Below, piece after piece: positions 4,661 to 28,933 of a DNA stretch of 41,248 bases. Made by a program: the position numbers and the translations under genes. Source of the stretch: Octopus bimaculoides (taxonomy: Eukaryota); NCBI RefSeq assembly GCF_001194135.2, contig NC_068999.1, forward strand, positions 52,567,893-52,609,140. Direction: 5' to 3'. Below the pieces are notes generated by a model. The model had not been told where the DNA came from. It did not search any database and was given only the letters and a program-made list of their open reading frames with translations. Positions within the stretch are counted from its first letter, which is position 1. Each line of letters begins with the position of its first letter.

Positions 4661-4699
4661 AAATTTGAGCAAAGTCAACTCCAACACATTGGCACCAAC

Positions 4700-4921
4700 T
4701 TCATGCAAGCATGAAGGCATGCTGACAAAACACTGCTCCTCTAAATCAAAAGCTTACCTGTCATTGTGGTTCTGTGGTACAAAGCATCTAGCTATCTACT
4801 CAAGAAAACACCGAGTAAATGATCCACAAGCACTCAAGCAAACTGAGTCCTCAACTTGTTCCATTTGTCAAAAGGCTTGCAAGGCTCCAGCAGGCCTCAA
4901 GAGACACATTAGTGTCCATAG
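4700..4921 (+). mobile_element. Probable LINE ORF2 C-terminal remnant with single C2H2 motif
   Basis: TCSICQKACKAPAGLKRHISVH is a lone C2H2 finger of the kind ending RTE-type ORF2. It has no neighbouring fingers or linkers and ends near a (TA)n. Confidence 0.4.
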
Positions 4922-4971
4922 AACGCTTTATTTTATACTGAACCCTAATTTGTCGTTCAGAACAAGAGAAT

Positions 4972-4976
<5 letters not shown>

Positions 4977-5034
<58 letters not shown>
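4977..5034. repeat. (TA)n microsatellite
   Basis: ~29 TA units. Similar runs at 2725-2744/3018-3033, 10865-10887, 27783-27824 and 38016-38062. Confidence 0.95.
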
Positions 5035-5039
<5 letters not shown>

Positions 5040-6420: not shown

Positions 6421-6959
6421 CTGAAAGTTATGGTATCCAGGGCAAGAAATAAAATTACATCCAGTGGTGAAACTCCAGCTCTTGATTTCAGGAGTTTGGG
6501 GAAGTATGGAAATGCCCCTTTAGTTACCACTACTTCTAAGTTTGTGCTGGCTTAGGATATTATTCCTTGTCAAGGTCTCCAGTTATAGGTCAAATGGTAG
6601 AAGATGGTTGTGTGATGTGGAAGTGAACTGGTCCCCTAGACACATATCTCATGAGCACCCCACTCCATCACTACCTGTGTGTGGACATACCCTGATGTCA
6701 TGTAAACCACCCCCAATGTTTAAAGGTTAAATAGGTCTTATGCTTCAAGGGTGAGCTTGGGAAAGAAGGAGATGAGCAGAGTGGACTATAATTTAATTGG
6801 CAAAACAACAGGAATTCACTGTTGTATCCTTCCCAAGAAAAATTATGAATCTTCAGATTTTGGTATGAATGTCTATGACCACTGATGCCTGTAAGTATGC
6901 CACATGAAGAGAAAAAGATGTTGTATGAATGTAGTTACATGCATATTTTCATTTTATAA

Positions 6960-7155
6960 TAATTTCAAATTTTGGCACAAGGTCAGCAATTTTGAAGGTA
7001 AGTCAAGTACTACATTGACTGTAGTACTTGACTTACCCCCAAAAGATGGAAACAGTGTTGATTTTAGTGTAATTTGAACTCAGAATGTAAAGAGAAAGAA
7101 GAAATGGCACTTACGATTTTGTCTGATGTGCTAAAGATTTTGTTAGCTCACGACC
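6960..7155 (-). mobile_element. SINE family 1 copy
   Basis: Reverse complement of the 684-895 family (TTTTGGCACAAGG.CAGCAATTTT...ATTTGAACTCAGAATGTAAAG). Confidence 0.7.
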
Positions 7156-7198
7156 TAAATTATCATTAAATAATAATAAACTTTTCTTCCTTTTTCAG

Positions 7199-7384
7199 GA
7201 TATTGAAGGTCGCATATGTAGTCTGATATTTTATCACAAAGAATCAGATCCTCATCCATATTTTTCCTGGGACCAATTGAAAGTTGGGAAATATATTTGT
7301 ATCTTGGAACCCGAGATTCATTTTTTTCTTGATGGACAAGTTGGTTTTAGAATTAATTCTACTAAGGATGTTAGGGTTTTATAA
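7199..7384 (+). CDS. Gene A, terminal coding exon (phase 0 to TAA), C-terminal half of OB-fold-like domain
   Basis: Strong polypyrimidine tract CTTTTCTTCCTTTTTCAG|. Translates DIEGRICSLIFYHKESDPHPYFSWDQLKVGKYICILEPEIHFFLDGQVGFRINSTKDVRVL*. AATAAA at 7402-7407. Homologous exon at 11459-11635 (-). Confidence 0.85.
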   Translation, partial: DIEGRICSLIFYHKESDPHPYFSWDQLKVGKYICILEPEIHFFLDGQVGFRINSTKDVRVL

Positions 7385-8299: not shown

Positions 8300-8720
8300 G
8301 AAACCATGCCTGGATAACTGATTTGGCAGAGTTTCTATGGCTGGATACCCTTCCTAACGCCAACCACTCCGTGAGTGTAGTAGGTGCTTTTATGTGCCAC
8401 CGGCACGAAGGCCAGTTAGGCGGTACTGGCTCAAAATGGTGTATTTTACGTGCCACCTGCACAGGAGCCAGTCCAGCGGCACTGGCAACGATCTCGCTCG
8501 AATGTGTTTTCACGTGCCACTGGCACAATTACCGGAAGGCGACGCTAGTAACGATCATGCTCAAATGGTGCTATTTATATGCCACTGGCACGGAAGCCAG
8601 ACAGCTGCTCTGGCAACAATCATGCTCGGACGGTGGTGTTAGTGCTCCACTGGTACAGGTACCATCACGATTTCGCCTTCACTTACCCCAACAGGTCTTC
8701 GCAAGCCGAGTTCAGTGTCC
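8300..8720 (-). mobile_element. Repeat family 3 copy with LINE-shared 3' tail
   Basis: Contains TTTGGCAGAGTTTCTA.GGCTGGAT.CCCTTCCTAACGCCAACCAC (reverse complement of 30170-30215) and four GTGCCA.(T/C)GGCAC/GTGCCACC subrepeats. Confidence 0.75.
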
Positions 8721-8724
8721 AATG

Positions 8725-9230
8725 AATTCTTTTTTGATGCGATGTGTGAGTTCATTAGAGTAACTCTCTAGCCAGAATTGAACTGCCTCTATTCCTAGGC
8801 TGTGGAGGATATTAGAATAGAGGTTGACTACTTTGAAGGATACTAGTAGGGTGTTTTTGTTTGTTTTAGGGAGATGATTGAGCATATCCAGGTCATCCCT
8901 TATGTAGCTTTTGATATGCTTGAGGAATGGTTTTAAGAGGGTATCTAAAAAGTTACTGAGGCGGTGGGTTTCACATGCAAGACCTGCTATTATAGGACTT
9001 AATTTGAGGTCATTAGGAGTAGGGAGCTTGATTATTATGGCTGTGGCTGTCCTTCATGTGTTACTTATTTTCTCATGAGGTAGAGCGTGTGAATTAATGT
9101 TACATGTGGGTGGAATACACAGTGCTTCCAGAGCTCAGTATTGCTGAGATAGACTTTCTACATCTTCATAAATATGCATCATTTGTTCGCTTTTTACAAG
9201 AGAGCATGTGAAAGATAGACAGACAGGGAA
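8725..9230 (-). mobile_element. Penelope-like element reverse transcriptase fragment
   Basis: Minus frame LKLSPIIAGLACETHRLSNFLDTLLKPFLKHIKSYIRDDLDMLNHLP...LLVSFKVVNLYSNILHSLGIEAVQFWL matches PLE RT motifs (RPII.G...TH..S..LD..L; SFDV..LYTNI). Confidence 0.8.
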
Positions 9231-11458: not shown

Positions 11459-11635
11459 TTATAAAATTCGAATTTGTTCAGCAGAATCAATTGAAAGAAT
11501 ATTATTTTCTAGACAAATTTTAGGATTCAAGATACAAATACACTGACCAACTTTCAGTTGGTCCCAGGAAAAATATGGATATGGATCAAAGTCATTGAAA
11601 TGAAATAACAAAATTCTCTGCTTATCATCAGTATC
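11459..11635 (-). CDS. Gene B, terminal coding exon (exon 9), paralogue of gene A last exon
   Basis: Long U-tract then AAAG| acceptor. Translates DTDDKQRILLFHFNDFDPYPYFSWDQLKVGQCICILNPKICLENNILSIDSAEQIRIL*, sharing PYFSWDQLKVG and ICIL with gene A. Confidence 0.85.
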   Translation of the reverse strand, partial: DTDDKQRILLFHFNDFDPYPYFSWDQLKVGQCICILNPKICLENNILSIDSAEQIRIL

Positions 11636-12374
11636 CTTTAAAAAAAAAAAAGAAAAAAAGTTTATTATTATTTAAATGAAAATATGCATGTAAATACATT
11701 ATTTAGTACCTAGCTTCTAACAACAGTTGTATTCTATCCAATACTGTCAAACACAAAATACATATTGTAGGATAGATGATCGAATAAAATATTTTCTTTA
11801 TGAAAGAACTTCAGTTTTTATGCTTTTACAACTTTTTTACTGCACTGCAAATATTTTGAAGGTCTATCATAACCATCTTTTATAGTCTGTAGTGAGATTT
11901 AAGAATAGCTCCAAAATTAATAAGTTTTTTGTTAGATAATGTATAAAGCATTAAATATAGAATTTTCCAAAAATCCAAGTTAATGAAATATGTTGCCAGC
12001 CCTATGATCCACACTCCAAAATAGCTTTAATAAATCAAAATTATCATATATAAGAGGGGATAGATTTGTACATTGCAGCAGTAATCTTTGTACCATAGGT
12101 CACAACAACTTTGTGATAACTTACAATCTCTTTATTATTCAATAGTTTCAATGATGTAAGAGCTATTGAAAACAACTGGATCTGTTGAATTTAGCCCTTC
12201 CATTTGTACTTGTTCAGGATTGCTATCTTACTTTAAGCAATGACATGTCATAAAAGTAATCATAAGAAACAAAACTTAGAGGTCTACACACATATAAAGA
12301 CATAAACTCTAACATGCATACTTTCTCTTGAGCTACAAGTTCTTTTATATCAGTTTCCAATTGCAGCTACCTTT

Positions 12375-12416
12375 GGGGTGGAGGTAAAGGACATGGACTG
12401 CACCCCCTTTCGGTCA

Positions 12417-12447
<31 letters not shown>

Positions 12448-12713
12448 TTTTTCTACAGAAACCCCACCTTTTCAACTGCAGAGATTGTGAATTCCCCACC
12501 TAACTTTTCACTTCTTTTAGAAGTGTTTTTTTGGCAAAATATATAGAAAAATATGGAGATTATGATTCTGAAAAAAAATTTTGGTAAAATTTCACTTTTG
12601 AAATGCCGATTTTTTTGCGGATTCGGAATCACTGCAGTCGAAAAAGTGGGTTTCTGTAGAAACTGCTCCACCCACCAAAATGGGGTGTGGTCTATGTCCT
12701 TTACCTCCACCCA
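12375..12713. mobile_element. MITE with ~32-bp TIRs and internal sub-TIRs
   Basis: Left GGGGTGGAGGTAAAGGACATGGACTGCACCCC vs right reverse complement TGGGTGGAGGTAAAGGACATAGACCACACCCC. Inner arms TTCTACAGAAACCC..CTTTTC.ACTGCAG.GATT. Both flanks read CTTT (candidate TSD). Confidence 0.8.
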
Positions 12714-13331
12714 CTTTCAGTTACTGTTGTCAAACTACACAGCTGCTCTGAGCCATGTTAAAGAGATCCAACTGATCAGCTTCTCTACATCTTAGGTGGC
12801 ACATCAAAGGATACAATGCATTTCTCTTTAAACAATACATCAGTCAAATACTGAAGAAATTGCAGTCTTTGTTATTTAGGACTGGCCAATACTATTCAAA
12901 TGAATTATTTTTTTTAATATATTTCTTCTGGTTGTGTAAATTCCAATTGAAAATAATCCCATCTCTTAAACCTCATCTGATCTTTTTGATTCCCCACTAA
13001 AAATATTCCTACCAATACGAAGAATTCTCCCCTCTTTTTCTTCTCAAATATGATGCTTCTTTAATCAGTACTCCCAGAGAAATCCTCCATACTTATTGCC
13101 CAGTCTATGTCGACATCCAAACCATACAAACTAGATAAAGCTTCTTCAAAACTATTTCTTTCTACTTCAACAGACTTGCCAATCTATATACACTAAGTGT
13201 ATACATATACACTAAGTGCATATATACATCATGTTCTATCGAGATTATAATCATCCCTGATTTGTTACAACATTTAGTATCTGAGTATGTGTAATGTAAA
13301 CAACAATAAGATTGAAGTTGAAAAATGGATA

Positions 13332-13381
13332 ATGGGGATATATGCCATATTTCAGTTCTTGCGCCTTCATCAGCACCCCAT
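13332..13381 (-). ncRNA. Degenerate type I hammerhead-ribozyme-like motif (copy 1)
   Basis: Minus strand ATGGGGTG-CTGATGA-A-GGCGCAAGAACT-GAAA-TATGGCAT-A-TATCCCCAT. Stem I pairs; stems II and III are mismatched. Confidence 0.4.
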
Positions 13382-13727
13382 CCAACCCATTAACCATCCA
13401 TGAACTCATTGCTTAAATAGTCACTAAATATAGCAGTGTAACATTAGTGAATATACTAATTTTACATATTAAACACATTCCTGAAAGTTGGTATGTAAAT
13501 ATTAATGACCTAAAGGGACACTGTATTTTGTTATGTGACTATAATATAAAAGTGTTTAATATACTTTATAATATAAGACAATACTGTGTTAGCAGTGCTA
13601 CTACATCACTTGTTAAGGTTGCCTCTACAGATATTCTATAGAAATTATAGCCAGCACTGATTTGATATGACATTTTATATCTGAATATGCCTAATGTAAA
13701 CAACAAGATCAAAGATGAAAAATGGTT

Positions 13728-13781
13728 ATGGGTGTGTATGCTACATTTCAGAAACTCTTGCTCCTTCATCAGCACCACATC
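13728..13781 (-). ncRNA. Type I hammerhead-ribozyme-like motif (copy 2)
   Basis: Minus strand ATGTGGTG-CTGATGA-A-GGAG-caagagt-TTCT-GAAA-TG-tag-CAT-A-CACACCCAT. Stem II is 4 bp with wobbles, stem III ATG/CAT, putative AUA cleavage triplet, stem I only partly paired. Confidence 0.5.
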
Positions 13782-14229
13782 CAACCCATTAACCATTCAC
13801 GAACTCATTGTTTAAAAAACCATTAAATAGAGAATCTGTAGAGATAACCTTAACAGGTGATTTTATAGCACTGCTAACACAGCAGAAGACAGTATTGATT
13901 TATAAAGCATTTAATATACTTTGTAGTATATTATGGTTGCATAACGAAATAGAGTGTCCTTATCATGTATGAAGGTACCTCTGGTCACTTCAAACCAACA
14001 AAGCCACTGGCCCTAACAATGTTCTTTCTATTATCATTAATCAGTACTTTATATACTGTGTTCAAATTCTGAGATTGGCTTGGCCTTTCATCATTTCAAG
14101 GTGGATAAAACAAGTAACAATTAAGCAGTGGGGGGGGGGGGTTAATGTATTTAACTAACCACTCCTCTTAAAAAGGCTGGCCTTGTGCCAAAATTAGTAT
14201 GAATTATTTTTAAACAGTTCACCCAAGAG

Positions 14230-14760
14230 ATACTCCTTAGATTCATCAAATTCTTTCTCTCTTTCTCCCCAGGGACTATCACAATCTCTGGAAACAAAAC
14301 ACACAACAGTCTGTCCCATTTCCTCAAATGACAATCCCACAGACCATGTCAGCTATCATCCTATTTCACTCACTTTCAACATCTTTACAACAACCACTTT
14401 TTCCAATAGCTAACCATCCAGTGCAGCTTTTGTAAAGTTAGATCTACAGGAGACCCAGTGTCACTCACCCTTGAGCCATTTAGTAAAACCAGTGTTATTG
14501 CTTTTGCCATTGCAAAGCAATCAACTGGGCTTGGCATGCAAACTTCCTGACAAAACTGTCTGCCTGTTGGCTTCATCGATCTCTTATGTCTTGGGTCTGA
14601 CAGAATGCACTATCATAGTGAGTGTTGATGGAGCTCTCTGACTATACAATGACTCTGGTGTGCTCCAAGCTTCAGGTTTATTACCCAATACTCTTCTTCT
14701 AGTGTATCAGTGTGCTGTCATCCACAACAATATCAATTCATATACATATACCTCCTTTCA
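14230..14760 (+). mobile_element. Highly degenerate CR1/Jockey-like LINE RT fragment
   Basis: Remnant motifs NPTDHVSYHPISL (cf. NYRPISL), AWHANFLTKL, VDGALS and SGVLQ (cf. SGVPQG). Broken frames. Confidence 0.55.
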
Positions 14761-15646
14761 TTTCTTCTTAACCTTCCACAATTAAATATCATCCGTGATC
14801 AGCCTAGACACCTCAAGTAACATGAACACAGACCTCAAAAACGTTCTCTAATGAGATCATGCCATTCTTATCTCTTTCAACAGCAAAAAGATACAATCAC
14901 TTCACATATCAGGAAAACAATATTCAAACTACATGGATTCTGTTGAAAGTAATACGCAAGAAGGTATTACCTTTGTATGCATTAACTAAATATCCGAGAA
15001 ATTACATACCCTTCATATGGCCAACTCTATTCAAATAGCTCAAAACCTATTCCTTGTTTTTCTATATAAATGGTCTATTTCATTACTAGTTAACTTAATA
15101 CTTTTCACTATTGTAAATGCAATTCATTTTGAATTGTTGAGTTAAGAGAAATTCTACAATATCACTGAAATTAATGTACAAGATTCTAGGTAACCTCTCA
15201 ACCTATTCAATGTAACAAGCAAATTTCCCTTTAGAAAAATATTTAGTGATTTTATGATAAATAGAAACCATATGTTTAAAGCTTAAACCCTTTCAGTATA
15301 TAAAGTCAGGATAGGAACAAACAGAAATTCCAATGAAATAGTAATTTTGAATGCAATATATTAGATTTCATTGATTACTGTGCTTATAAAGACATTTTGT
15401 AAATTATTTACTGCCATTTGATTATTTCACATTTTGATACTTTTAATAAGTTTGACTTAACTCTATCTTCCATTCACATTACTCCAAAATAATTGATATA
15501 TATATATATAAATAAACTATTGCAGCAGATTTAACACATAAACTTCTGAGCAGTGATTGTTCTCTGAACATAGACATAATCATATTTAGAAAAAAGGAAT
15601 GAGTGGAGAATGATAGAAACAAAAAAAACAAATAAATGGGAATGGG

Positions 15647-15702
<56 letters not shown>

Positions 15703-15746
15703 TGNNNNNNNNNNAGAAACAAAAAAAACAAATAAATGGGAATGGG

Positions 15747-15804
<58 letters not shown>

Positions 15805-15860
15805 TGTTCATATATAATTAAAAATATATAAATTGAATAAAAGACTACAAATATACTCAC

Positions 15861-16036
15861 TAGAATTAAATAATTTGGTTTATAATAAAAATATTCTTCT
15901 TTTAGTATGAAAGCAACAAGAAGAACATTTCCTTTCTGAATAGCTTTATCTTCCATCATAAAATCAATGAATGTAGTAACTATTTTAAATGAAGGAAATA
16001 GCGCTTTTGCGTAGTGTAGAGTTTTGAAGAAATTAT
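15861..16036 (-). CDS. Gene B, exon 8 (phase 1-0), paralogue of gene A exon 2
   Basis: Acceptor TTTTAG|, donor |GTGAGT. Translates (Y)NFFKTLHYAKALFPSFKIVTTFIDFMMEDKAIQKGNVLLVAFILKEEYFYYKPNYLIL and aligns to gene A exon 2 (NF.K..H.A...FP; N.LLVA.IL). Confidence 0.85.
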
Positions 16037-17499
16037 CTAAAAGAAAAATTTAGAAATTGAAATTATACAATAAGAATAAATCAAAGAAGTAAAAATATGA
16101 GAGCCATAGCCCATTTCAAGTTGAAATCGGTGTTAAGTATATAGTAGAGATGGCATAGACAAACAAGATAGATATATTGTCCTATTGAGTTAAGTAAGTC
16201 CTGTTCTAAGTTGAAACTCATCAAAATTGACTTTTTCTCTAATATGAAGAAAATAAGTATCAGTATGTACTGTAATCTATTCAATTATATATATATATTT
16301 TTTTTGTAACATACTGGACACATGACTTGGTTTTTAAAAAAATCACTTCTTCATAAGCTTTTTTTATATTTGAGAAAGTGTCCTTTGAACTCTTTGGAAT
16401 GAGTGTTGAGGTAGAAAGAAATATATATAGAATATATTATAAGAATATATATGGACACTAGTACTTGAGCAGTACTTAATTTTATGAACTCCAGAAAAAT
16501 GGGAAGTGAAGTTGAGCTAGGTAAGATTCTGACTCAGAATTTAAATGAAGTAGCTAAATATTGCAAAGCAATTTTGTCTGTTTCTCATTTCAGTCAATCC
16601 ACAGCCTTGCTCTTTGGCATTTATATATATAGAAAGACAATTTACCCAAGTTTAGAAATTGTATGATAATATTAATCTATATATTAATAAGAATGGCGAA
16701 TGAATGTCAGTTTGGAGTAGCTCAGAGTTGACCAGCGGTACAGAAATGGGGATATGAAATGGTTTGGAGTGGGAGGGAGGCAGTGAGAGATGGATAAAAC
16801 AGGGATAGAGAGAACAACGGTATAAATTATGGTAAATATGGGTGGGAGTGATAATGGGTTCATGGGAGGACCCAGTTGTCTGGATGTGGAAAAGAAGATA
16901 AAAAGAAGCAGGTATAGACTTGGCAAAAACACGAGGTGAAGAAGCCAGTTGTGTGCATATACAATATGTCCTGGCACCTTGTTAACACTACCTTTAACTC
17001 TCTTTGTGGTACTACTCCTTACTGGCTCTGTACCACAAGGGTAAGCACAGGAGAGAAGACGACTAGCAGAATAAACGGTTAAAAGAATCAACAGGAAAGC
17101 CAATGGTGTAGCCTTCCTCAAGAAAAACTATCTTCAGACTTTGTCATTCAGATTCATGGTCACCAATGCCTATTGGCATGGCACATGAAAAAAAACAGAC
17201 ATATTTGAGAGTCAGTATGAGTGGTAGAGTAAGAGAGTTGGCAGAGAACAAGATTAAATGCTGTTCCATATTGAGTTCTATCCAGGTGTACCAAGTTTGA
17301 ATGCTTCCTGGCTTAATTGCGCTTTTCAGCTTTCTGAGATCAATGAAATAAGCAGGAACATACCATTAGTGGTTCAATGGCCTGTATGACTTACCTACAA
17401 ATTAGTGGGCCTTGGAGCCTGTGTGATAAATCAATAAATGTAAGATATTCACTGTTTTAATATACTTATTCCAAAATTATTTCAAAACATAGAACTTAC

Positions 17500-17658
17500 A
17501 TCTGAATGTTTCTTTTAAGTTGTTAGAAGATGTACATAATTTCTTGTGACGAGGCCATGCAGATTTTTGACAAGATTTTGAGCAATATTTTGCATTCTTG
17601 CACTGACTACATTTCATTAAATGTTCATCTAACTTTCCACAGTTAGCACATTTTTCAG
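17500..17658 (-). CDS. Gene B, exon 7, MYND finger 8 (phase 1-1, 159 nt); direct paralogue of gene A MYND exon
   Basis: EKCANCGKLDEHLMKCSQCKNAKYCSKSCQKSAWPRHKKLCTSSNNLKETFR. Donor T|GTAAGT. The acceptor AG is the first after an AG-free stretch and aligns with gene A's. An in-frame ATG at 17671 is an alternative (unspliced) start. Confidence 0.85.
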
Positions 17659-18139
17659 CTTCATAAATCATGGAACCAACCAATGCATGTAAATAAAAGA
17701 TATACATCAACATATACAAAGGATTATTTTTTTTAAACAGATCTCATAAGAATGACAAAACAATGTCAGTCTACTTACATAGAAAATCAAATGTAATTTA
17801 TATTTTTGGTTGTTTCTTCTAACAAAAAAATAAGACAAAACAGTAATTAGATGATGTTATTTAATCATGTATTGAATGTTAATTATTGGATTAAATTAAT
17901 TTGTTTAACATCTGTTTTTCCATGGTAGCCACAGGTTGGACAGAAACATATTGAAGCTAGATTTTATGGTCAGATGCTCTCCCTGTCCCCATTCCTTACT
18001 TTTTTCTCAACTAGAGGTTTTCTCACAGGTCTTTAAAGGTGCAGACTGATCAATGAAAATATCAACAAGGGATGTTAAATACTATTCACTGTTTCACTCA
18101 AGTGAAACCATAGGATGTCAACATTCATGCATACACACT

Positions 18140-18295
18140 GTACACATAGGCTTCCTATAGTTTCTGTCTACCAAATTCATTCACAAGGCATTGGCCAGCC
18201 AAGAGATATAGTAGAAGACATTCATCCAATGTGGGACTGAACCTGAAACCTCATAGTTGTGATACAAACTTCTTAAGCACATAGCCATGCCTGCA
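18140..18295 (-). mobile_element. SINE family 2 head fragment
   Basis: AGTTTCTGTCTACCAAATTCA.TCACAAGGC.TTGG...ATAGTAGAAGACA...CTTCTTAA.CACATAGCCATGCCTGCACC. Confidence 0.7.
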
Positions 18296-18439
18296 CCATT
18301 CCATGATTCATCTTACCCCTGTATGTCCTGAAAACAAATGCTGCCTGTTATTCATCTCACTGAAATATATAGAATAAGTACCAATATACGGGATCTTTCA
18401 AATGACTACCATTTGCTTACCAATTCGTGACCTTGAAAC

Positions 18440-19300
18440 AATGTGATGTGATGGGGTACCCAAAAGTGACCAGACATGTTCTCTGTGGGACAAGCCATTG
18501 TAGTTCAGGCTTCCACTGCCAGAAGCCATTTGATGCAACCCTCAGGCATCAGTCTGCTGACCAGCAGCATTGGCTGATGTTGTACTACCATGTGATGTGT
18601 CTTTATTTGGCAGTGCTTCTCCACTGGCCATCGATTTTTGTGATGGTTGAAATGAAGGAACAGTGTGTTTCTGTGAATTCCTGTTTACTACGGGGAAAGC
18701 AGCAACCAAAACAGTTGTCATGCTTCAAACAGTTTACAAGTATTGTTTTCATGCTTTAGGAATGGTCCCTTGTTGCTTGAAGATCAATCTTATTCAGGGT
18801 GACTGTCAACCTCCTGAACGAATGAAAACATCACAAAAATTCATGAACTGATCTTGTGGGGACTGTTGCTGAACGATTGACAAACTTGTTGGTATGACTG
18901 GTGTGTCCTGGAGCTCCTGCCAAAGAATTTTGAGTGAGGAATTGTGAATGAAAAGTGTTGCAGTAAAATTTGTGCCTTGCTTGCTCTTGGAAGATCAAAA
19001 ACAATCATGACTGAATGCGTGTCGTGAACTGAAAGAACGGTTGGAAGTTGATTCGGACCATTTTTTGAAGGTCATCCCTGGTGATGAAAGCTGCTGCTAT
19101 GGTTACAACATGGAAATGAAACAGCAATTAAGTCAATTGAAGCATTCAATGTCACCATGCCCCAAAAAAGCGCATCAAGAGAAGTCCAATGTCGAGATGA
19201 TGCTGGTTTGTTTCATTGATGCGAAAGGAATTGTCCACGCAGAATTTGTTCCTCCTGATCAAACTTTTAACCAAATCCAAGTTCAAACTCTTCCATAGTA
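18440..19300 (+). mobile_element. Mariner-family transposase pseudogene (internally deleted, 3' truncated)
   Basis: MVEMKEQ..VNF....GKAAT.TVVMLQT, KFVP.LL, GDESCCYGY..E.KQQ.SQ.K...SP.PKKA...KSNV..ML.CF.D.KGIVH.EFVPP.QT.NQ, with the first catalytic D (GDES) visible. Frameshifts and stops. Confidence 0.9.
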
Positions 19301-20742
19301 AGTAAAATTATGATAATTCTGTTATGTTAACCTTTTTGTTACTATATTTATTTTGAGATGCTCTGTGTTTCTTTCAATTACTTTAAATATAACATAGAAT
19401 TTAGTAAAATAATTTAGTTATCATTCAGCTAGTGTTAGGAACATAAATTGTGACCAAGGTTTGGTGGAAGATTTTAATTCAAAACTTATGAAAACAAGAC
19501 ATTTGTATTCAGAGCCAGAGCTGGTTTCAGCCAAGTTGGTAACAAAATGGTTAAATATCTAAAAAACTGATACAATTCCTTGTTTGATTTGATGCATTCA
19601 ATGAATTAACTTGGTACTATAGGCTACCAAGCAGTAATAGCAATAATATAGAATCATTGATGCTCAAGGTTGAGCATTCCTCTGCACATACCAGAAGTTT
19701 TGAGGGAGGCTGGCAGTTGCCCATGCATAAATGCAAGCCTCCCCTTTTCATGCCATGAATATTTATCCAAGAGAAAGGCTACCGAGTTAGACTAATATAG
19801 CTTGGTACCAGTACTGTCACAAGCCAGGACAATATTTTTTTGAAGAAGACATGCATGAAAGTCTCTCCTCTCACTGCTATTGATATTTATCCAAAGGATT
19901 GCTTTGGGCTGATACAACTTGACACCAGTGTCACTGCAGGCATTACTACCAGAACATAGAGAGTTGGAACAGATAAAACATCTTAACTGATCCTCTGACA
20001 ATTCTGCCAATCCATTCTCCTAGATTGGTACATTTTTTAATCAATCCTGAAAGGCAATATTGACCTCAGCAAGATTTGAAATCAGAATGCAGAGAGATGA
20101 CACATACCATGATGCATGGTATCCAATACTCTACTACCTCTGTCAAGTCACCACCTTTATAGTTATAATAATTATATACCTTTTACTAGGACAGACTGTG
20201 ACATTTTATCCACAGACTCTTCCTTACTGTGTAACACGATTTTTGTCCTTGGGTAGCAATTGTTATTTCCTATTTGCTTACTCCTAGAAAGTATGAAAAA
20301 TGGTTAATATTTCCTTCAAACTTTGCTTTTGTTATATTTACTCAAACCCGAAAGAATCCCTCTCAACACATGGCTACAATGCTCTCTCACCACTCCTCAT
20401 GATCAGAGATGCTCACATTGTCAGCCATTAAGGGACATGCTCAAACGGTTAAGGTTAAGCACTTGAAAAGCAAATCAGTGGCATTGAGTAGAATATTTGC
20501 TAAAATGATATTTATGCTTCAGCAACTCAGCACAGAATCTGTCTGGAATATAATGGAAAATAAGTCAGCTTCAAAACCTTGAGTGCAGGTCACAAAAGCA
20601 AAGTGTGAAGGGAATAGTAGTCATTTCCTTTGATTTCTAGAAAGGAGTATATAGGAAATAACACTTATTAACTACCCCACCCTTCAAAAGAAAAAAAAAA
20701 TTCTTACACAGTGTTATTGTTATTATTGAATCTGTCACTCAC

Positions 20743-20916
20743 CTTTGACTGATTCTTTAATGGAACTTTTATCATCTTTAGACTTTGCAGTTTTGCATGA
20801 ATTCTTGTGATGTTTCCAGTCAGCTGTTTGACAAGTTTTGGAACAATATTCTATTTTGTTGCAAGCAGAACATTTTTTCAACACTGCATCTGTCCTTTTA
20901 CACCTGGCACATTCAC
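20743..20916 (-). CDS. Gene B, 174-nt MYND cassette exon 6 (phase 1-1)
   Basis: AAACAG| ... G|GTGAGT. GECARCKRTDAVLKKCSACNKIEYCSKTCQTADWKHHKNSCKTAKSKDDKSSIKESVK, no stops. Missed by the ORF track. Confidence 0.85.
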
Positions 20917-21014
20917 CTGTTTACAGAAATGAAAATCAGAAATTATCAAACACATCTATAATATAGGTGATATTATATTGAAAAGTGTTAACATTACGAT
21001 AGCTAAGGAAAAGA

Positions 21015-21445
21015 TGGCAAGGTGGCAAAATCGTTAGTACATGCTGTTAGTTTTTCTGGTTCGTTATATTCTAAGTTCAAATCTCACAATATCACATTTG
21101 TCTTCCATTGTTCTGGAGTCAATAAGATAAGTACATGTCAAGTATTTAAGTCAGTGTAATCCAATGATGTCCTCTATCTAAAATTGCTGGCCTTGTGCCA
21201 AAATTTGAATCAGTTATTATAAGAAAGGATGGTGAATTGGTAGAATCATTAGAACTTTAGAAAAAAATGCCTTGACATAGCTGTTCTTGCTTTTAGATTT
21301 TGAGCTCAAATCCTGCTCAGGTCAACTTTGCTTTCATACCCTTCAGGGTTGATAAAATAAACTATCAGTCAAGAAGTCAGGGGGATCTATTTACCTGACA
21401 AATCCCCTCTAACAAATTTCAGATCATGCGCTTAAACCAGAAATA
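21015..21445 (+). mobile_element. Two adjacent degenerate SINE family 1 copies (21015-21210, 21228-21445)
   Basis: Both show head GG..AG.TGG.A.AATC.TTAG, AGTTCAAAT/AGCTCAAAT and core ...GTC.ATAA.ATAA. The first ends GGCCTTGTGCCAAAATTTGAA. Confidence 0.65.
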
Positions 21446-21717
21446 NNNNNNNNNNNNNNNNNNNNNNNNNNNNNNNNNNNNNNNNNNNNNNNNNNNNNNN
21501 NNNNNNNNNNNNNNNNNNNNNNNNNNNNNNNNNNNNNNNNNNNNNTAATATAAGGTGTTTGTTCTTAGTTGGTGTTGTGTGGTAAAAAGTTTGCTATGTA
21601 GTGGTGGTAAATCTTAAGTAATAGAGGAATATTTTTATGTAATGGGAGTATATATTTATGTGGTGGAAATCTAAAATGGTATTGTTGAAAAATAAATTTC
21701 TTACTTCTGTCACTTAC

Positions 21718-21891
21718 CTTTGACTGATATTTTACTGGAACTTTCACCATTTTCAGTCTTAGCAGTTTTGCATGAAGTCTTGTGATGTTTCCAGTCAGCT
21801 GTTTGACAAACTTTGGAACAATATTCCACATTGTTGCAAGCAGCACATTTTTTCAATGCTACATCTGACTTTTTACACTTGGCACATTGAC
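21718..21891 (-). CDS. Gene B, 174-nt MYND cassette exon 5 (phase 1-1)
   Basis: CAACAG| ... G|GTAAGT. GQCAKCKKSDVALKKCAACNNVEYCSKVCQTADWKHHKTSCKTAKTENGESSSKISVK. Confidence 0.85.
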
Positions 21892-22901
21892 CTGTTGGGG
21901 GAGATGGAAAACAGAAAATATCAAACACTTCTACCACATGTATGATTAAGTTTTAATGTTGTTATTATGGATAAAGTGTTTATTTGGGATAACTGCAATA
22001 ACCTTAAGGGTATCAAGTGGTTAAATAAAGATATTCCCCTCTTTTTCAATATTTTTAGGTTGTAACTCTTAATAATTATATTAATACCGTTAATGTAGGG
22101 ATTAGTTTACATNNNNNNNNNNNNNNNNNNNNNNNNNNNNNNNNNNNNNNNNNNNNNNNNNNNNNNNNNNNNNNNNNNNNNNNNNNNNNNNNNNNNNNNN
22201 NNNNNNNNNNNNNNNNNNNNNNNNNNNNNNNNNNNNNNNNNNNNNNNNNNNNNNNNNNNNNNNNNNNNNNNNNNNNNNNNNNNNNNNNNNNNNNNNNNNN
22301 NNNNNNNNNNNNNNNNNNNNNNNNNNNNNNNNNNNNNNNNNNNNNNNNNNNNNNNNNNNNNNNNNNNNNNNNNNNNNNNNNNNNNNNNNNNNNNNNNNNN
22401 NNNNNNNNNNNNNNNNNNNNNNNNNNNNNNNNNNNNNNNNNNNNNNNNNNNNNNNNNNNNNNNNNNNNNNNNNNNNNNNNNNNNNNNNNNNNNNNNNNNN
22501 NNNNNNNNNNNNNNNNNNNNNNNNNNNNNNNNNNNNNNNNNNNNNNNNNNNNNNNNNNNNNNNNNNNNNNNNNNNNNNNNNNNNNNNNNNNNNNNNNNNN
22601 NNNNNNNNNNNNNNNNNNNNNNNNNNNNNNNNNNNNNNNNNNNNNNNNNNNNNNNNNNNNNNNNNNNNNNNNNNNNNNNNNNNNNNNNNNNNNNNNNNNN
22701 NNNNNNNNNNNNNNNNNNNNNNNNNNNNNNNNNNNNNNNNNNNNNNNNNNNNNNNNNNNNNNNNNNNNNNNNNNNNNNNNNNNNNNNNNNNNNNNNNNNN
22801 NNNNNNNNNNNNNNNNNNNNNNNNNNNNNNNNNNNNNNNNNNNNNNNNNNNNNNNNNNNNNNNNNNNNNNNNNNNNNNNNNNNNNNNNNNNNNNNNNNNN
22901 N

Positions 22902-23042
22902 TTTCAGTCTTAGCAGTTTTGCATGAAGTCTTGTGATGTTTCCAGTCAGCTGTTTGACAAACTTTGGAACAATATTCCACATTGTTGCAAGCAGCACATT
23001 TTTTCAATGCTACATCTGACTTTTTACACCTGGCACACTGAC
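22902..23042 (-). CDS. Gene B, MYND cassette exon 4 (3' end lost in assembly gap; expected end ~22869 if 174 nt)
   Basis: AAACAG| then GQCARCKKSDVALKKCAACNNVEYCSKVCQTADWKHHKTSCKTAKTE then N-gap. Two nt differ from exon 5 over the visible part. Confidence 0.75.
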
Positions 23043-23849
23043 CTGTTTGGAAAAGGATAAAAAGCAGAAAAAAAATCAAACACTTTTGCAACATGTATTA
23101 TTTAAAATTCTTAATATTGTTACTGTGGATAAAGTGTTTATTTGGGATAACTGCAATAACCTTAAGGGTATCAAGTGGTTAAATAAAGATATTCCCCTCT
23201 TTTTCAATATTTTTAGGTTGTAACTCTTAATAATTATATTAATACCGTTAATGTAGGGATTAGTTTACATATTTTCTCTCTTTATATATAAATGGAATAT
23301 TTTGGAGTTGTCAGTATTGTTGTGTTCTTGTCAAAAGATGACCTGTGTGGTGTTTATTGATTTAAGGTCCTCCATTCAGTTCTCACAGGTGGTATGGTGT
23401 ACATACACACACACATATATATATAGATCTGTATATATACACATGCACACACTGATATATTTATATGCCTTTTAACCTTTGCATGTACACACACATATAT
23501 GCATACATACATTTGTACATATGTATACACACATACATACATTCTTTCAAATATATATAATATTGTACTGCACATATATATATATATATATACATATGGT
23601 GGTTGTCTACTCCTTATGCAGAGTCTGCCCACCTCTTGTACTTACACTTTAGATACATCATTGTGTCTGATGTGGTTTTTTAAAACCAGACAATGTACTG
23701 AAAAGACACTCATGTAGATTGCATATCTGATTTGGACAACCAAGACCTGCAGTTAAGTTCAGATCTTTGTGGATCTTAAACTGTCTTTTGAGGCATCTGT
23801 TAGATTTGCAGAGCTTATGGCATAATAAATACAAGATTTTCACACAGTC

Positions 23850-23955
23850 TCCATCTACCAAATTCACCTGCAAGTCTTTAGTAGAAGACACTTGCCCAAG
23901 GTGCTATGCAGCAGGTCTGAAACTAAAACTACATGGTTGCAAGGGAGCTTATTAA
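23850..23955 (-). mobile_element. SINE family 2 head fragment
   Basis: TCTACCAAATTCAC...CAAG.CTT.AGTAGAAGACACTTGCCCAAGGTGC.ATGCAG. Confidence 0.65.
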
Positions 23956-24081
23956 TTATTCAGCTAGAGCTATATGGGTATAACAGATATATAATGTTGC
24001 ACAGTGGACTTATATGTATTTATGTAGTTGAAATATAAAATGGTTTAGTTAAGGGAAATATTTCCTGTTTGTATTACTAAC

Positions 24082-24255
24082 TTTTGACTGATTTTCCATT
24101 GGAACTTTTATCATCTTTAGTCTCTGAAGTCTTGCATGAAGGCTTGTGTTGTTTCCAGTCAGCTGTTTGACAAATTTTGGAACAATATCGTACATTGTTG
24201 CAGCCAGAACACTTTTTCAGCACTACACCTGACTTCTTACACCTGGCACATTGAT
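24082..24255 (-). CDS. Gene B, 174-nt MYND cassette exon 3 (phase 1-1)
   Basis: AAACAG| ... A|GTTAGT. DQCARCKKSGVVLKKCSGCNNVRYCSKICQTADWKQHKPSCKTSETKDDKSSNGKSVK, no stops. Missed by the ORF track. Confidence 0.85.
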
Positions 24256-24659
24256 CTGTTTGGGAAGATGAAAAGCAGAAATATCAAACACCTCTTCAAC
24301 ATGTATGTTCCATTTAAAAGTGTTTACATTGTTAATGTGAGTCAGAAATTTGTTTATAGTTGGGAGTTGATATTGTTTCTATATCGTAATATGTTTTGAA
24401 ACAAAAGTAATACTTGAGTAACTGGAGGTAATCAAATGAGAAAATTTTACAATCATCATTTAATGCCCACTGTTCCATACTTGCATGGGTCAAACAGATT
24501 TTCTATGGTACCTTTTTTGTTGCCAATACTTACCTCTTTCTAAGCAATATAACATTTCCCCATGGCCAAATGTCTTCCATAGAGGACTGGAAAGGAACAA
24601 CATCTCTTGTATGATTGTGATACTTGTTTACAGCCATCGTGTGATGTCAAGACGGGTAC

Positions 24660-24800
24660 AAACACATACAACAGAGAATTCCACTCACAAGGCTTTGGTC
24701 AACCCAAGGCTGTAGTAGAAGACACTTGCCCAAGGTGCCATACAGTGGGACTGAATCCAAGACATGGTTGGGGAGCAAGCTTCTTAACCACACACGCAGC
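24660..24800 (-). mobile_element. SINE family 2 head fragment
   Basis: CCACTCACAAGGCTTTGGTC.ACCC.AGGCT.TAGTAGAAGACACTTGCCCAAGGTGCCA...CTTCTTAACCACAC. Confidence 0.7.
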
Positions 24801-25093
24801 TAAGCTAGCCGCATTTTATCTATTGATAAGTTATAAATATATTATATTTGGTTATGACATGTGGAGAAAGCAGAAGAGGATTTGGTAATAATTTCGTTTA
24901 AGTGTCTAACACAAAAACCAAGGTTTTTAGACATTTAGATACAGATTGCTAATATATTATAATGTGATATGCTGTGGTAGTGTAGCAGAGACATATTTTT
25001 GTATTGGAGATGGTACAGTTTATGTATAGTGTGATATAGCATGTTGTATTAAGGCTTTAGTAATCAAATAATTTGCCTGCTTCTAGCACTCAC

Positions 25094-25267
25094 CTTTATC
25101 TGAGCTTGTGCTGAAACTTTCATCATCTCTAGTTTCTGGAATCACACAGGAGAGCTTGTGATGTTGCCAGTCCATAATTTTACAAAATGTGGAACAGTAT
25201 TCTACCTTGTTGCAGGATGAACATTTTATTAATGCTACATCTGATCTGTCACATCGAGCACAATGGC
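25094..25267 (-). CDS. Gene B, 174-nt MYND cassette exon 2 (phase 1-1)
   Basis: AAACAG| ... G|GTGAGT. (R)HCARCDRSDVALIKCSSCNKVEYCSTFCKIMDWQHHKLSCVIPETRDDESFSTSSDK, no stops. Missed by the ORF track. Confidence 0.85.
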
Positions 25268-25597
25268 CTGTTTTAAGAGACAGGGGAGAGAAAAAAAAAC
25301 TACAATATCAAACACTTCTACATCATGTGTGATGGTGTTTGATTTATAAGTTTTAATGCTGCTTAATGTAATAAGTTTGGTTTGTGTATAGTGGAAAACC
25401 AATGACAAATGATCCTCATATAGTATTGTACCAAACATGCTTTACAATAAATATAATGTCTGAACTAATGACAGTAAATCTATGTGAAAAACTTACAGAA
25501 AATAATGGTTTCAAATTTTGGCAAAAGGCCAGCAATTTCAGAATGATGAAAGTTAAGCTATTACATTGACCTCAACTTGTACTTATTTTATTGATCC

Positions 25598-26606
25598 TGT
25601 AGCGTACTTCTCTCTCTTTCTGTTATATATACATGGATGCGGACGTAGTGGATAACAGCTAGCCTTCGACTGCACTTTTGGATCCTGTTGTGTCCACCAC
25701 TCTGATTGGTTGGTATTGGCGCATTTTGTCTCCTGTTCTATTCTGTGCCAAGATGCAACCCAACCAATCGCAGCCTTCAGATAAGGTCGCGTGGGACAAT
25801 TTTCTGAATCCCAGTTTAAGCCGATAGAATATTATAAATAGCTACCTTTTCACCGTCACAGTTTTGTCAGCCTTCTCAGCTCCAGACCTTCTGAGGTCTA
25901 GCCGCTGACCACAGAGCACACAGCCAGTTCCAGCGACGACAACAGCTGCTTCATGGAGATTCAACACTTAGTTCAGCAGCATTCAGGACACTCCATCTTC
26001 GTCTTGACTACGCCNNNNNNNNNNCACTTAGTTCAGCAGCATTCAGGACACTCCATCTTCGTCTTGACTACGCCAACTTCTCTACGTACACACCACCTGC
26101 ACAGATTCTATAACCTCACTGTTTGTGAATTACTTCACCATGGTTAACAGTGAATACAACCTGTGAGACCTCATGTACCAAGTAACCGGCCGCAGCATTG
26201 AAGCCTCAACTTCTTACATGACATGTGTCTCTTCCCGGCTCTGCATTGCCACCACATCTTCTTGTTACAGCACCTCAACCACCGTGTACCTTGAATACGA
26301 ACTGGTATTTACCATCCTTGTGTCAGGACTTTCTTCTAACGTCCTTATAGACTCTTTTCTATGCTCTGTATTTCCCGCATACACACTTTGTTTGCATGAT
26401 GGCCTGTCTATTATTGTGTTTATATGTTGCACTCACACACACAGACATACATGTTGACATATCAAAATCTTCTCTTAAACCTTTTACCAGTTGTGTCTCT
26501 CTTTACCTTTTGGCACTCATACTCATTTATCCTCTTTTCGTATTTTTTATTTGTATCGACTGTGCGATGTGCTAAAGGAGCCATTCCTCGTCGCACGGTT
26601 GTTACA
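25598..26606. mobile_element. Solo LTR (TGTA...TACA) with 4-bp TSD ATCC, inserted into a SINE family 1 copy
   Basis: Removing it restores the SINE core TACTTATTTTATTGATCC|TGAAAGGATGAAAAGCAAAGT. ATCC at 25594-25597 and 26607-26610. No coding remnant; CCAAT-like and TATAAATA motifs inside. Confidence 0.75.
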
Positions 26607-26958
26607 ATCCTGAAAGGATGAAAAGCAAAGTTTTTTTACTTTCTGCATTTTCTATATAATGCCTTCTCAGTTTTTTCACATTTCTTCTATTATTCAATTT
26701 TTTTAGTTTGTTATATGCGATTTGTGCCTGAAGAATAAGTTTGAGTATTTCTCAACATATATATATTCCTTTTTAGTATCAGTCCAAGGACTGTAGCCAT
26801 GCTGGGGCAGTGCCGTTTGCTTTGCTATACTTTCACTAAACTGCCTCTGATATGTGACATTGGTGGATGAAGGAGTTCGACGTTACTGCCCTCATCTGCT
26901 GGGGTTTTTGCACCAGGTTCCAAACCTGGTACTTATTCTATCAATCTCTTTTGCCGAA

Positions 26959-27132
26959 CCGCTGTTGCAGGGACGTAAACACATCAGCATCGGTTGTCAA
27001 GCGATGGTGGGGATACAAACACAGACACACAAACATATATATACGACGGGCTTCTTTCAGTTTCCGTCTACCAGATCCACTCACAAGGCTTTGGTCGGCC
27101 CGAGGCTATAGTAGAAGACACATGCCCAAGGT
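26959..27132 (-). mobile_element. SINE family 2, central part
   Basis: Reverse complement of 39945-40150 (CGACGGGCTTCTTTCAGTTTCCGTCTACCA.ATCCACTCACAAGGCTTTGGTCGGCCCGAGGCTATAGTAGAAGACA). Confidence 0.85.
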
Positions 27133-27162
27133 CCCACACACACACACATATATATATATATA

Positions 27163-27289
27163 CAGGGTGTTCACAAAGTCTGGGTACATAGGGATTAACA
27201 CATACTTTAAGAAATTATTATTTCTTATATTTAATTGTTTATGTTATGATTTTATTTACTCCAAGTAGCCAGACTTTGTGGACACCCTG
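27163..27289. mobile_element. 127-bp Tc1/mariner-type MITE with TA TSD
   Basis: TA|CAGGGTGTTCACAAAGTCTGGGTAC ... GTAGCCAGACTTTGTGGACACCCTG|TA. Confidence 0.85.
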
Positions 27290-27470
27290 TATATGTTTGT
27301 GTATCTGTCCTCCCACCATCGCTTGATGTCCCCGTAACTTAGTGGTTCAGTAAAAGAGACCGATAAAATAAGTACTAGCCTTACAAAGAATAAGTTCTGG
27401 GGTTGATTTGTTCGACTAAAGGCGGTGCTCCAGCAGGGCCACAGTCAAATGACTGAAACAAATAAAAGAA
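27290..27470 (+). mobile_element. SINE family 2, 3' half
   Basis: CCATCGCTTGA...AAAGAGACCGATA.AATAAGTACT...GGTGCTCCAGCA.GGCC.CAGTCAAATGACTGAAACAA.TAAAAGAATA. Confidence 0.8.
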
Positions 27471-27489
27471 TAGCACTGCATAGTACCGA

Positions 27490-27690
27490 AAATCTCAACA
27501 TTACTATCAGGTTACAGAACCAGATACTGCATCAGCTTAGACTTCAAAGGCCCACAGTTCTTCAAAATCCTCCCCTGAGAAACCTGTATGGCATTGATGT
27601 AGGCCTTTTCAAAACAAAACTGGATCTTCTTCTGTCAAGAGTTCTGGATGAACCTACCTCAAGGCAAGAAACACAGATGAGGGCAGCATA
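27490..27690 (+). mobile_element. CR1-type LINE 3' fragment
   Basis: Frames give YCISLDFKGPQFFKILP and LRNL.G..VGLFKTKLDLLLSRVLDEP, resembling the CR1 ORF2 C-terminus. Confidence 0.6.
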
Positions 27691-27777
27691 GATGGGGTTT
27701 AGTGAAAGTGTAACAAAGTAAAAGATGGTGTCCCAGCATGACTGCAGTCCTTGGACTGAAACTTAAAAAGGAAAAAG

Positions 27778-27829
<52 letters not shown>

Positions 27830-27925
27830 GCACACACATGCCTCTGACCATATATAATTACATCGAAAAGCATTAAGCAAATTTAACACATTATCTTAAT
27901 ACAATATAAAGATATATGTACGTAC

Positions 27926-28535
27926 GTATATTTAGTGCTTGGCACAGGAGTCTATGAATTGGATAATGAATCAACAGACACCACTGAGAACAGTAACTCA
28001 CTTGCCTGCATCTTGGGCAAAAAATATGCTGGAATTTGAAATCTTTGCAACGGGGACATATCAACGGGTGATCAAAAAATAAAAATGGATTAGTAATGAA
28101 GCTGAAGAGGTCGAAGGGGTTAATGACTGGAAAGGGGTTGATAATATCTTCCAGATCAATAAAGCCTGTTGCCCCATCATCATCATCATCATCATCATCA
28201 CCATCATAATATTCAACGAAGCCTGTTGCCCCATCATCATCATCATCACCATCATAATATTCAACGAAGCCTGTTGCCCCATCATCATCATCGTCACCAT
28301 CATTATCTTTCTCAAGAATTGCAACCTGTTCTTCCTTCTTGAATCTAATATCTTGTTCATCAAGTTGAGCATTAGCAGAAGCTACAGTATTTACAGAGCA
28401 CACTCTGCTATGTTCAACGCTGTCTTCCATTTCACAGATGTCAGAACAATAAAAGACAACTTTACAATGCTTGCAATTTTGGAGTTGAGAATCACTTTTG
28501 CCACAATTTTGGCAGCAATTATTAATATTCACCAT
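27926..28535 (-). CDS. Gene B, first coding exon: MYND finger - acidic tandem repeat - 3xNPF - MYND finger (unspliced ORF continues to stop at 27891)
   Basis: ORF 27891-28535 holds two complete MYND patterns (CQNC...HSRVC; CPRC...HRLLC). The ATG is preceded by an in-frame TAA and by an upstream TTTCAG acceptor (5'UTR intron). A phase-1 donor C|GTACGT at 27925 matches the downstream phase-1 exons. Linkage to the downstream exons is inferred. Confidence 0.7.
28161..28302 (-). repeat. Coding tandem repeat, 48-nt unit (DGDDDDDGATGFVEYY) x3
   Basis: AAGCCTGTTGCCCCATCATCATC... occurs three times; the third unit has 3 extra GAT codons. Confidence 0.9.
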
Positions 28536-28676
28536 AGTGTTTTAAATTGATGGAGTTGTAGTCTTGAAACTGAAATAATATAAGAAAAAAAAAACAATTA
28601 TAGGATGAAAGAAATACTACAGAATTTAATTTTCTTTCTTCTCTATGTGGAATTATTAGTTTAAAAGATATAGATT

Positions 28677-28885
28677 TTTATCACATCAACAAATATAGGT
28701 TGGTATCATACAGTCAAATATAGCTTATCACACCATCAAATATAGTATATTATCACATGATCAAACATAGCTAGTTATCACATCATCAAATATGCTTTAC
28801 TATCACATCGTCAAATATAGCATATTATCATACCATCAAATATTATTTGTTATTATGCTATCAAATATAGCAAGTTATCACACCA
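28677..28885. repeat. Minisatellite, ~26-bp unit (TTATCACATCATCAAATATAGC..) x~8
   Basis: Repeated TATCA(C/T)A....CAAATATAG cores. Confidence 0.8.
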
Positions 28886-28933
28886 TTATTGTCAAACAAT
28901 AAATAATAATAATAATAATAATAATAATGATAA

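Follow-up and report, generated by a model that had tools for sequence, protein, structure and literature searches.

The solved MYND zinc fingers matched in this analysis are those of DEAF1, ETO/CBFA2T1, SMYD1/2 and ZMYND10, and these proteins carry one finger, combined with SAND, TAF/NHR, SET or PHD-bromo-PWWP domains. Modules that are repeated along a protein with one domain to an exon are familiar from EGF and LDLR-A arrays, in which symmetric phase-1 exons permit in-frame duplication, shuffling and skipping; these modules are mostly extracellular and disulphide-bonded, and arrays of C2H2 zinc fingers usually lie within one exon. Closest to the gene considered here are two predicted, uncharacterised octopod proteins, LOC115222007 of Octopus sinensis (XP_036367132/133, isoforms X2/X1 of 789/796 amino acids (aa); P0001/P0011) and CAI9736888 of Octopus vulgaris, which is predicted as a full-length orthologue of 792 aa (P0012). 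The gene itself lies on the minus strand of a 41,248-nt stretch of Octopus bimaculoides DNA (contig NC_068999.1; 35.7% G+C, nine runs of N), referred to below as the window, and all coordinates are positions in it. It encodes seven or eight MYND fingers followed by a domain that was predicted to adopt the oligonucleotide/oligosaccharide-binding (OB) fold.

The locus very probably represents one intact protein-coding gene, the orthologue of LOC115222007 and CAI9736888, which appears in the public annotation as two truncated models because of assembly gaps. As a system it is not new in kind, and its orthologues are already in public databases.

Gene model and octopod orthologues

When all six frames were searched for the C4-C2HC MYND pattern, it occurred in full eight times on the minus strand, from 17.5 to 28.5 kb, and a ninth time on the plus strand (1881-1997). 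The nine-exon minus-strand model proposed in an earlier note on this DNA was reproduced exactly: AG...GT is present at every internal border, the phases are compatible, and the joined exons give 1992 nt, i.e. 663 aa and a TAA, with no internal stop codon. The joined protein matched Pfam zf-MYND (PF01753) in eight stretches with 249.7 bits (cut-off 22.7; expectation value E=1.2e-75), which is far beyond chance.

Exon 1 (27926..28535, 610 nt) begins with an ATG (28535-28533) that has a stop codon two codons upstream, and ends at a GTACGT donor of an intron in phase 1. It carries finger 1 (28398-28514), finger 2 (27942-28058) and, between them, an acidic region (28184-28303) with a 48-nt coding tandem repeat, which is present in 2.5 copies (98% matches) and encodes GATGFVEYYDGDDDDD units; the orthologues carry a different acidic stretch at this place. 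Another tandem repeat, in which a unit of 25 nt recurs in 7-9 copies (69-75% matches), was found at 28668-28886, 130-350 nt upstream of the start codon. The five following exons are 174-nt units preceded by ...ACAG and followed by GT(A/G/T)AGT; their first two bases complete a codon and one extra base remains at the end, giving phase 1-1. These cassettes are exon 2 (25094..25267, finger 3), exon 3 (24082..24255, finger 4), exon 4 (modelled as 23042-22869 with an assumed length of 174 nt, finger 5), exon 5 (21718..21891, finger 6) and exon 6 (20743..20916, finger 7), and they are spaced by 975-1213 nt. Exon 7 (17500..17658, 159 nt) encodes finger 8, which is of a distinct type (CQKSAW...). Exon 8 (15861..16036, 176 nt) encodes the first half of the predicted OB-fold domain, with its N-terminal helix and strands 1-3, and exon 9 (11459..11635, 177 nt; TAA at 11461-11459) encodes the second half. 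Only two 176-nt open AG..GT segments in the right phase exist between exons 7 and 9, and 16036-15861 is the one that matches the orthologue. Downstream of exon 9, ATTAAA occurs at 10 nt and AATAAA at 342-414 nt.

A short intronic motif, (A/G/T)GTGTTTGAT, accompanies the cassettes (25307-25316, 24283-24292, 23075-23084 and, on the minus strand, 21920-21929), with the variant TGTGTTTGAT upstream of exon 6. It is located 29-48 nt upstream of all five cassette acceptors and contains a branch-point-like TTGAT. Five matches were counted against 0.42 expected (none of 100 shuffles reached five; one of the five is on the plus strand). It might serve as a branch point or in the control of splicing. It is kept even at exon 2, whose synonymous divergence (dS) from the other cassettes is about 1 or more, and its presence fits exons that are actually spliced. 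As to the decayed transposable elements with which the introns had been said to be full, a spot check confirmed one, a mariner-type transposase remnant (Pfam Transposase_1, E=4.2e-6) on the plus strand of intron 6 (19041-19298).

The gene, described as hidden in the earlier note, is split by gaps and not unseen. UPI000695970A of O. bimaculoides (366 aa; P0003), retrieved together with the orthologues by a search with the full model, corresponds to exons 1-4 with 100% identity and ends with '...KTAKTE' at the edge of a 789-N gap, while A0A0L8GJ91 (156 aa; P0016), retrieved by a profile of the C-terminal domain, runs from a Met inside exon 7 through exons 8 and 9 with the same junctions. The only portions without a public O. 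bimaculoides model are exons 5 and 6 and the beginning of exon 7. To call most of the exons invisible to the track of open reading frames (ORFs) was likewise an overstatement, as most cassettes are overlapped by ORFs. For annotation, this means that a single gene of at least 605-663 aa should take the place of UPI000695970A and A0A0L8GJ91.

The full model aligned to O. sinensis LOC115222007 with E=0, over 100% of the query and with an overall identity of 53%. When the O. sinensis protein was compared with the window by tblastn, every exon was matched, in order, and no further cassette remnants were found in the readable introns. Exon 1 matched residues 1-195 of isoform X2 with 62% identity in this search (71% over the aligned part), exon 8 residues 666-730 with 57%, and exon 9 residues 730-789 with 67%. 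Exon 2 is 80% identical to the finger-3 cassette of O. vulgaris and O. sinensis, of which it is the positional orthologue; exon 3 is 93% identical to its orthologous cassette, exon 5 is 84-88% identical to the finger 7 cassettes of both species, and exon 6 is 79-82% identical to the cassette of finger 10 in O. vulgaris and finger 9 in O. sinensis. The junctions of exon 7 agree with O. vulgaris ('...SVKAEKC...') and with A0A0L8GJ91. The fingers are reciprocal best matches with those of LOC115222007, and the domain order is the same. The O. sinensis and O. vulgaris models each unite, in one protein, everything from the N-terminus through the array and the last finger to the C-terminal domain, which bears out the assignment of exon 1, the array and exons 7-9 to a single gene.

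Finger number and evolution of the cassette array

Three of the four gaps within the gene are intronic: a 10-N gap in intron 1 (26015-26024), a 100-N gap in intron 5 (21446-21545) and a 10-N gap within a (GA)n run in intron 8 (15705-15714). The same 50-mer, CACTTAGTTCAGCAGCATTCAGGACACTCCATCTTCGTCTTGACTACGCC, flanks the first of these on both sides, and therefore this gap is an unmerged contig overlap, with about 60 artificial bases. Only the 789-N gap (22113-22901) touches coding sequence: it takes the final 33 nt of exon 4, the donor behind them and most of intron 4, so that exon 4 is readable only at 22902..23042 (141 nt), and continuity and frame across the gap are unproven.

The two sides of the 789-N gap resemble each other. 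The segments 22902-23270 (369 nt) and 21751-22112 (362 nt) are 93% identical, and both alignments end at the gap edges. The similarity is a mosaic, in which 145 identical nt of distal intron are followed by a divergent acceptor-side block of ~80-100 nt, with ~25% differences and indels, and then by the exon, where the readable coding sequences of exons 4 and 5 differ at 2 positions in 141 nt; the divergent block is thus flanked by identical stretches of 145 and 128 nt. Judging from this pattern, exon 4 is probably a recent tandem copy of exon 5 that has undergone gene conversion. Because every cassette is of phase 1-1, the reading frame stays open whether exon 4 is included or not, and leaving out exon 5 does not close it either. 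Given that exon 4 cannot be read to its end and nearly duplicates exon 5, the finger count in O. bimaculoides is seven or eight; of the eight fingers claimed earlier, the eight patterns and the eight Pfam stretches were recovered, and the number itself is left with this margin.

A smaller but considerable likelihood attaches to a protein of seven fingers, in which exons 4 and 5 would be one exon shown twice, as overlapping contig ends on either side of an artificial gap. The edge-to-edge match of 362 nt before and 369 nt after the 789-N gap speaks for this, as do the demonstrable unmerged overlap in the same gene at 26015 and the fact that O. sinensis and O. vulgaris each have just one cassette resembling exons 4 and 5. 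However, the mosaic divergence, together with the two coding differences, suits paralogues with gene conversion better than one locus read twice, the resulting period, 1151 nt, is in line with the spacing of the other cassettes, and the 789-N gap has a positive size estimate, unlike the 10-N overlap gaps.

It is rather unlikely that further cassettes lie inside the 789-N and 100-N gaps and that the true protein has nine or more fingers, like its orthologues. Both gaps are inside the array, their lengths are estimates only, and the orthologues do exceed the model by four cassettes (O. vulgaris fingers 5, 6, 8 and 9). Yet at the stated gap sizes the spacings between exons 4 and 5 (1151 nt) and exons 5 and 6 (975 nt) are of the normal period, leaving no room for an exon and two introns, and intron 3, which is gap-free, contains no extra cassette, though the orthologues have two cassettes there. 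Besides, of the four additional cassettes of O. vulgaris, three are shared at 97-100% identity with the neighbouring paralogue, which suggests their lineage-specific gain in that species.

Fingers 1-4 correspond by position to O. vulgaris fingers 1-4, fingers 5 and 6 both to finger 7, finger 7 to finger 10 and finger 8 to finger 11, and O. vulgaris fingers 5, 6, 8 and 9 are without a counterpart in the window. The finger cores are 74-92% identical between Octopus species. Intact fingers number eight in this model, 10 in O. sinensis (an eleventh is garbled), 11 in O. vulgaris, nine in the neighbouring O. vulgaris paralogue CAI9736886 (678 aa; P0015), which has the same C-terminal domain, and six in a partial sequence of Argonauta hians (P0005, six cassettes). 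With gastropod and bivalve relatives at 5-7, the multi-finger array is a recurrent trait within molluscs and not the singular oddity it had appeared to be.

Several features point to the way in which these numbers may have changed. In O. vulgaris, CAI9736886 has fingers that match fingers 5, 7 and 9 of the orthologue with 100% identity, which suggests exchange between neighbouring paralogues. In Argonauta the cassettes recur with the same period of 58 aa, and their mutual identity of 87-100% indicates either concerted evolution or independent expansion. The identities in the two species suggest that cassettes have often been exchanged or homogenised. Two further O. vulgaris isoforms, CAI9736889 (624 aa; P0002) and CAI9736887 (584 aa; P0013), are without exactly one 58-aa cassette, the orthologue of exon 3, so in-frame cassette skipping is at least annotated. 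Since all cassette exons are of phase 1-1, the frame can survive the duplication or loss of a cassette, its exchange between adjacent paralogues and its skipping during splicing, and this modularity explains why fingers number seven or eight here but 10-11 in the O. sinensis and O. vulgaris proteins and no fewer than six in Argonauta. The design with one finger per phase 1-1 exon offers a clear example of cassette duplication, paralogue exchange, concerted evolution and skipping.

All 64 zinc-ligand positions of the fingers are intact. None of the eight ligand columns varies among the cassettes, compared with 36 of 57 columns overall (P=1.2e-4; P=5.7e-4 for the 40-residue core). The ratio of nonsynonymous to synonymous divergence (dN/dS) of exon 2 against the other cassettes is 0.20-0.33 (Nei-Gojobori; Fisher P=4.5e-4 for E2-E5). 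Between exons 5 and 6, dN is 0.16 and dS is 0.08, and the 100 nt of intron just upstream have diverged with K of ~0.59. As this dS is far below the divergence of the adjacent intron, dN/dS among cassettes is unreliable here. The exons are far more conserved than neutral sequence, reflecting constraint, exon-limited gene conversion, or both. The invariant ligand columns and an exon divergence far below that of the introns thus support the earlier proposal that the fingers are under constraint.

The predicted C-terminal OB-fold domain and its family

The last ~120 residues of the protein had no match to a Pfam family, the matches of the window protein at E<=1 being to zinc-finger families only, and a profile of the domain found no match among PDB sequences even at E<=10. 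The family was collected with HMMER, by searching 1.84 billion representative proteins (E<=0.001) with a profile built from five Octopus sequences, and comprised 51 proteins, for example from Babylonia (1.6e-26) and Gigantopelta (1.8e-15). Pfam zf-MYND was detected in 39 of the 42 members scanned, and no other Pfam family is common to them; the representatives searched carry 0-7 MYND fingers. All 20 members that were looked up by name are from molluscs (gastropods, bivalves and cephalopods), in agreement with the lineage-specific architecture suggested earlier, and one decapodiform member occurred in assemblies of sequencing runs, on 51 contigs each about 1 kb long. These sequences appear to form an undescribed MYND-OB protein family, with all named members molluscan, and the window protein appears to be a divergent member of it. 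The family is unstudied and, so far, found only in molluscs, and would combine a variable number of MYND fingers with a C-terminal OB domain that has no Pfam entry. One scallop member is named TDRD1-like; there was no Tudor match in the window protein or in the 42 family members.

An AlphaFold2 model of the domain was built from a 33-sequence alignment and reached a predicted local distance difference test (pLDDT) of 90.9 and a predicted template modelling score (pTM) of 0.84. It shows an N-terminal helix and then a small barrel, with strands at residues 45-57, 60-66, 72-77, 98-102, 105-107 and 112-115. A previous model from five sequences was poor (pLDDT 65) and was not used. All of the best 50 PDB matches listed by Foldseek contain OB folds, and only the best of them, the MCM10 internal domain (E=3.8e-4, TMq 0.57-0.60), reaches E<=0.001; the others among the best 50 include Teb1, RPA, the LysRS N-domain, PolD DP1 (TMq 0.62), Stn1/Ten1 and HIN domains. 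The C-terminal domain of about 120 aa can therefore be confidently predicted to be an OB-fold beta-barrel, which gives a fold to the 'barrel' recognised in the earlier note. A specific relationship to the OB domain of TTC5/Strap was rejected, as the fold is a generic OB fold, 2xvs ranks only 49th (E=0.023, TMq 0.46) and Pfam gave no match to the TTC5 domain. Near-invariant residues of the family are R(H), P-x-P-Y-F, G and H-x-F-x-D-G-x-x-G-x-R; in the family alignment, the window protein keeps D, F, P-Y-P-Y-F-S-W and G.

A second MYND-OB gene is present on the plus strand (1869-7381), tail-to-tail with the first at a distance of about 4 kb. One exon, at ~1869-2030, encodes a finger, and two, at 2367-2543 and 7187-7381, encode the OB domain; the stop codon is at 7379-7381, and the 5' exons must lie beyond the window start. 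Its finger is very like finger 8 of the minus-strand gene. Its OB domain keeps the family consensus (...EPEIHFFLDGQVGFRINS...), and the gene resembles O. vulgaris CAI9736892 (P0018) and P0031. The last intron of this paralogue contains a retrotransposon, represented by reverse-transcriptase ORF fragments on the plus strand (4641-6449; RVT_1 match at 5195-5575), and an N gap (2745-3017) adjoins these fragments. Between the two convergent genes, an open stretch of 153 aa on the plus strand (8302-8760) has an internally repetitive look and no Pfam match.

Proposed function and comparison with known systems

The closest solved MYND domains are those of DEAF1, SMYD2, ETO and ZMYND10. The DEAF1 residues Met512, Glu514, Thr516, Gln529 and Trp533 are common with ETO for the binding of SMRT/NCoR PPPLI peptides (PMC3555993). 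The contact Gln and Trp, corresponding to DEAF1 Gln529 and Trp533, are both kept in fingers 4-8, while finger 3 has the Trp only; the position of DEAF1 Glu514 is occupied by Lys in all fingers. The predicted protein would consist, in order, of an N-terminal block of two divergent MYND fingers around the acidic repeat, the array of fingers encoded by the 174-nt exons, the distinct last finger and the OB barrel. Each canonical finger might bind a short proline-rich motif of the PxLxP/PPPLI type, as the MYND domains of DEAF1, ETO, BS69 and SMYD proteins do, and several proline-rich partners could be gathered in this way at the ligand of the OB domain, either a nucleic acid or another protein, with the valency set by the number of cassettes. 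The best guess at the function is thus a multivalent adaptor for proline-rich motifs, anchored by its OB domain. In a more specific and decidedly speculative version, MYND-OB proteins would be mollusc-specific adaptors tethered to nucleic acids, with the OB domain binding single-stranded DNA or RNA and the fingers recruiting several PxLxP co-repressors or chaperones; the valency would be tuned by cassette gain, loss, paralogue exchange and skipping, and octopods would stand at 8-11 fingers with a remodelled OB ligand surface.

A number of observations count against an intact gene with such a role. The joining of UPI000695970A to A0A0L8GJ91 rests on the predicted proteins of the orthologues, and exon 4 is incomplete and may be an artefact. 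Fingers 1 and 2 are without the contact Gln and Trp. The earlier note had named a dN/dS of about 1 among the cassettes as a result that would refute its proposal, and among the youngest ones (exons 3, 5 and 6) the ratio is formally of this kind, 0.57-2.0 and not different from 1, on only 2.5-8 synonymous differences. In the OB domain, a K replaces a near-invariant R, and a 3-residue deletion removes the H, D-G, G and R of H-x-F-x-D-G-x-x-G-x-R; the same losses were found in the O. sinensis and O. vulgaris orthologues. The OB domain is also the least conserved part between species, with 61-69% identity, compared with 79-93% for the cassette exons. Finally, the literature searched contains no paper on the gene, its family or tandem MYND arrays.

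The dN/dS of about 1 or higher among exons 3, 5 and 6, the loss of family-invariant OB residues in the Octopus lineage and the low overall identity to O. sinensis might be signs of a decaying gene, in which a young array of tandem cassettes drifts neutrally, the OB domain degenerates and no function is under selection. This is very improbable, given that the readable coding sequence, 1.96 kb distributed over 17 kb, contains no stop, frameshift or broken splice site, that every one of the zinc ligands is kept, and that exon divergence is far below intron divergence; the OB deletion is common to three Octopus species, yet the domain is open and was modelled as a barrel. Hardly credible at all is the existence of two genes as annotated, a 366-aa four-finger protein and a 156-aa MYND-OB protein with exons 5 and 6 as unused relics, for although the public models are separate, one stops exactly at the gap edge without stop codon context and the other begins at a Met that cuts finger 8, both of which indicate truncation artefacts, exons 5 and 6 show no damage to frame, ligands or splice sites, and the orthologues of two species are single proteins.

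Read as one gene, the locus agrees with LOC115222007 and CAI9736888 in the two-finger N-terminal block, the 58-aa cassettes, the last finger and the C-terminal domain, which are colinear with the nine exons. It differs from them in having 7-8 instead of 10-11 fingers, being without four of their cassettes, and it may have a private duplicate in exons 4 and 5. The predicted five-strand barrel with an N-terminal helix is shared with the OB folds of the MCM10 internal domain (3h15, 3ebe), RPA, Teb1, the anticodon-binding domain of LysRS and PolD DP1 (TMq 0.45-0.62), whereas sequence identity to these is 7-16%. In comparison with EGF and LDLR-A arrays, the repeated module is a zinc finger, and no signal peptide is evident. 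With DEAF1 (4a24, 2jw6), ETO/CBFA2T1 (2od1, 2odd), SMYD1/2 and ZMYND10, the protein shares the C4-C2HC ligands and the ...YCS..CQ..DW..H...C signature; in contrast to these single-MYND proteins, it carries seven or eight fingers in tandem, one per exon in the cassette array, together with a predicted OB fold.

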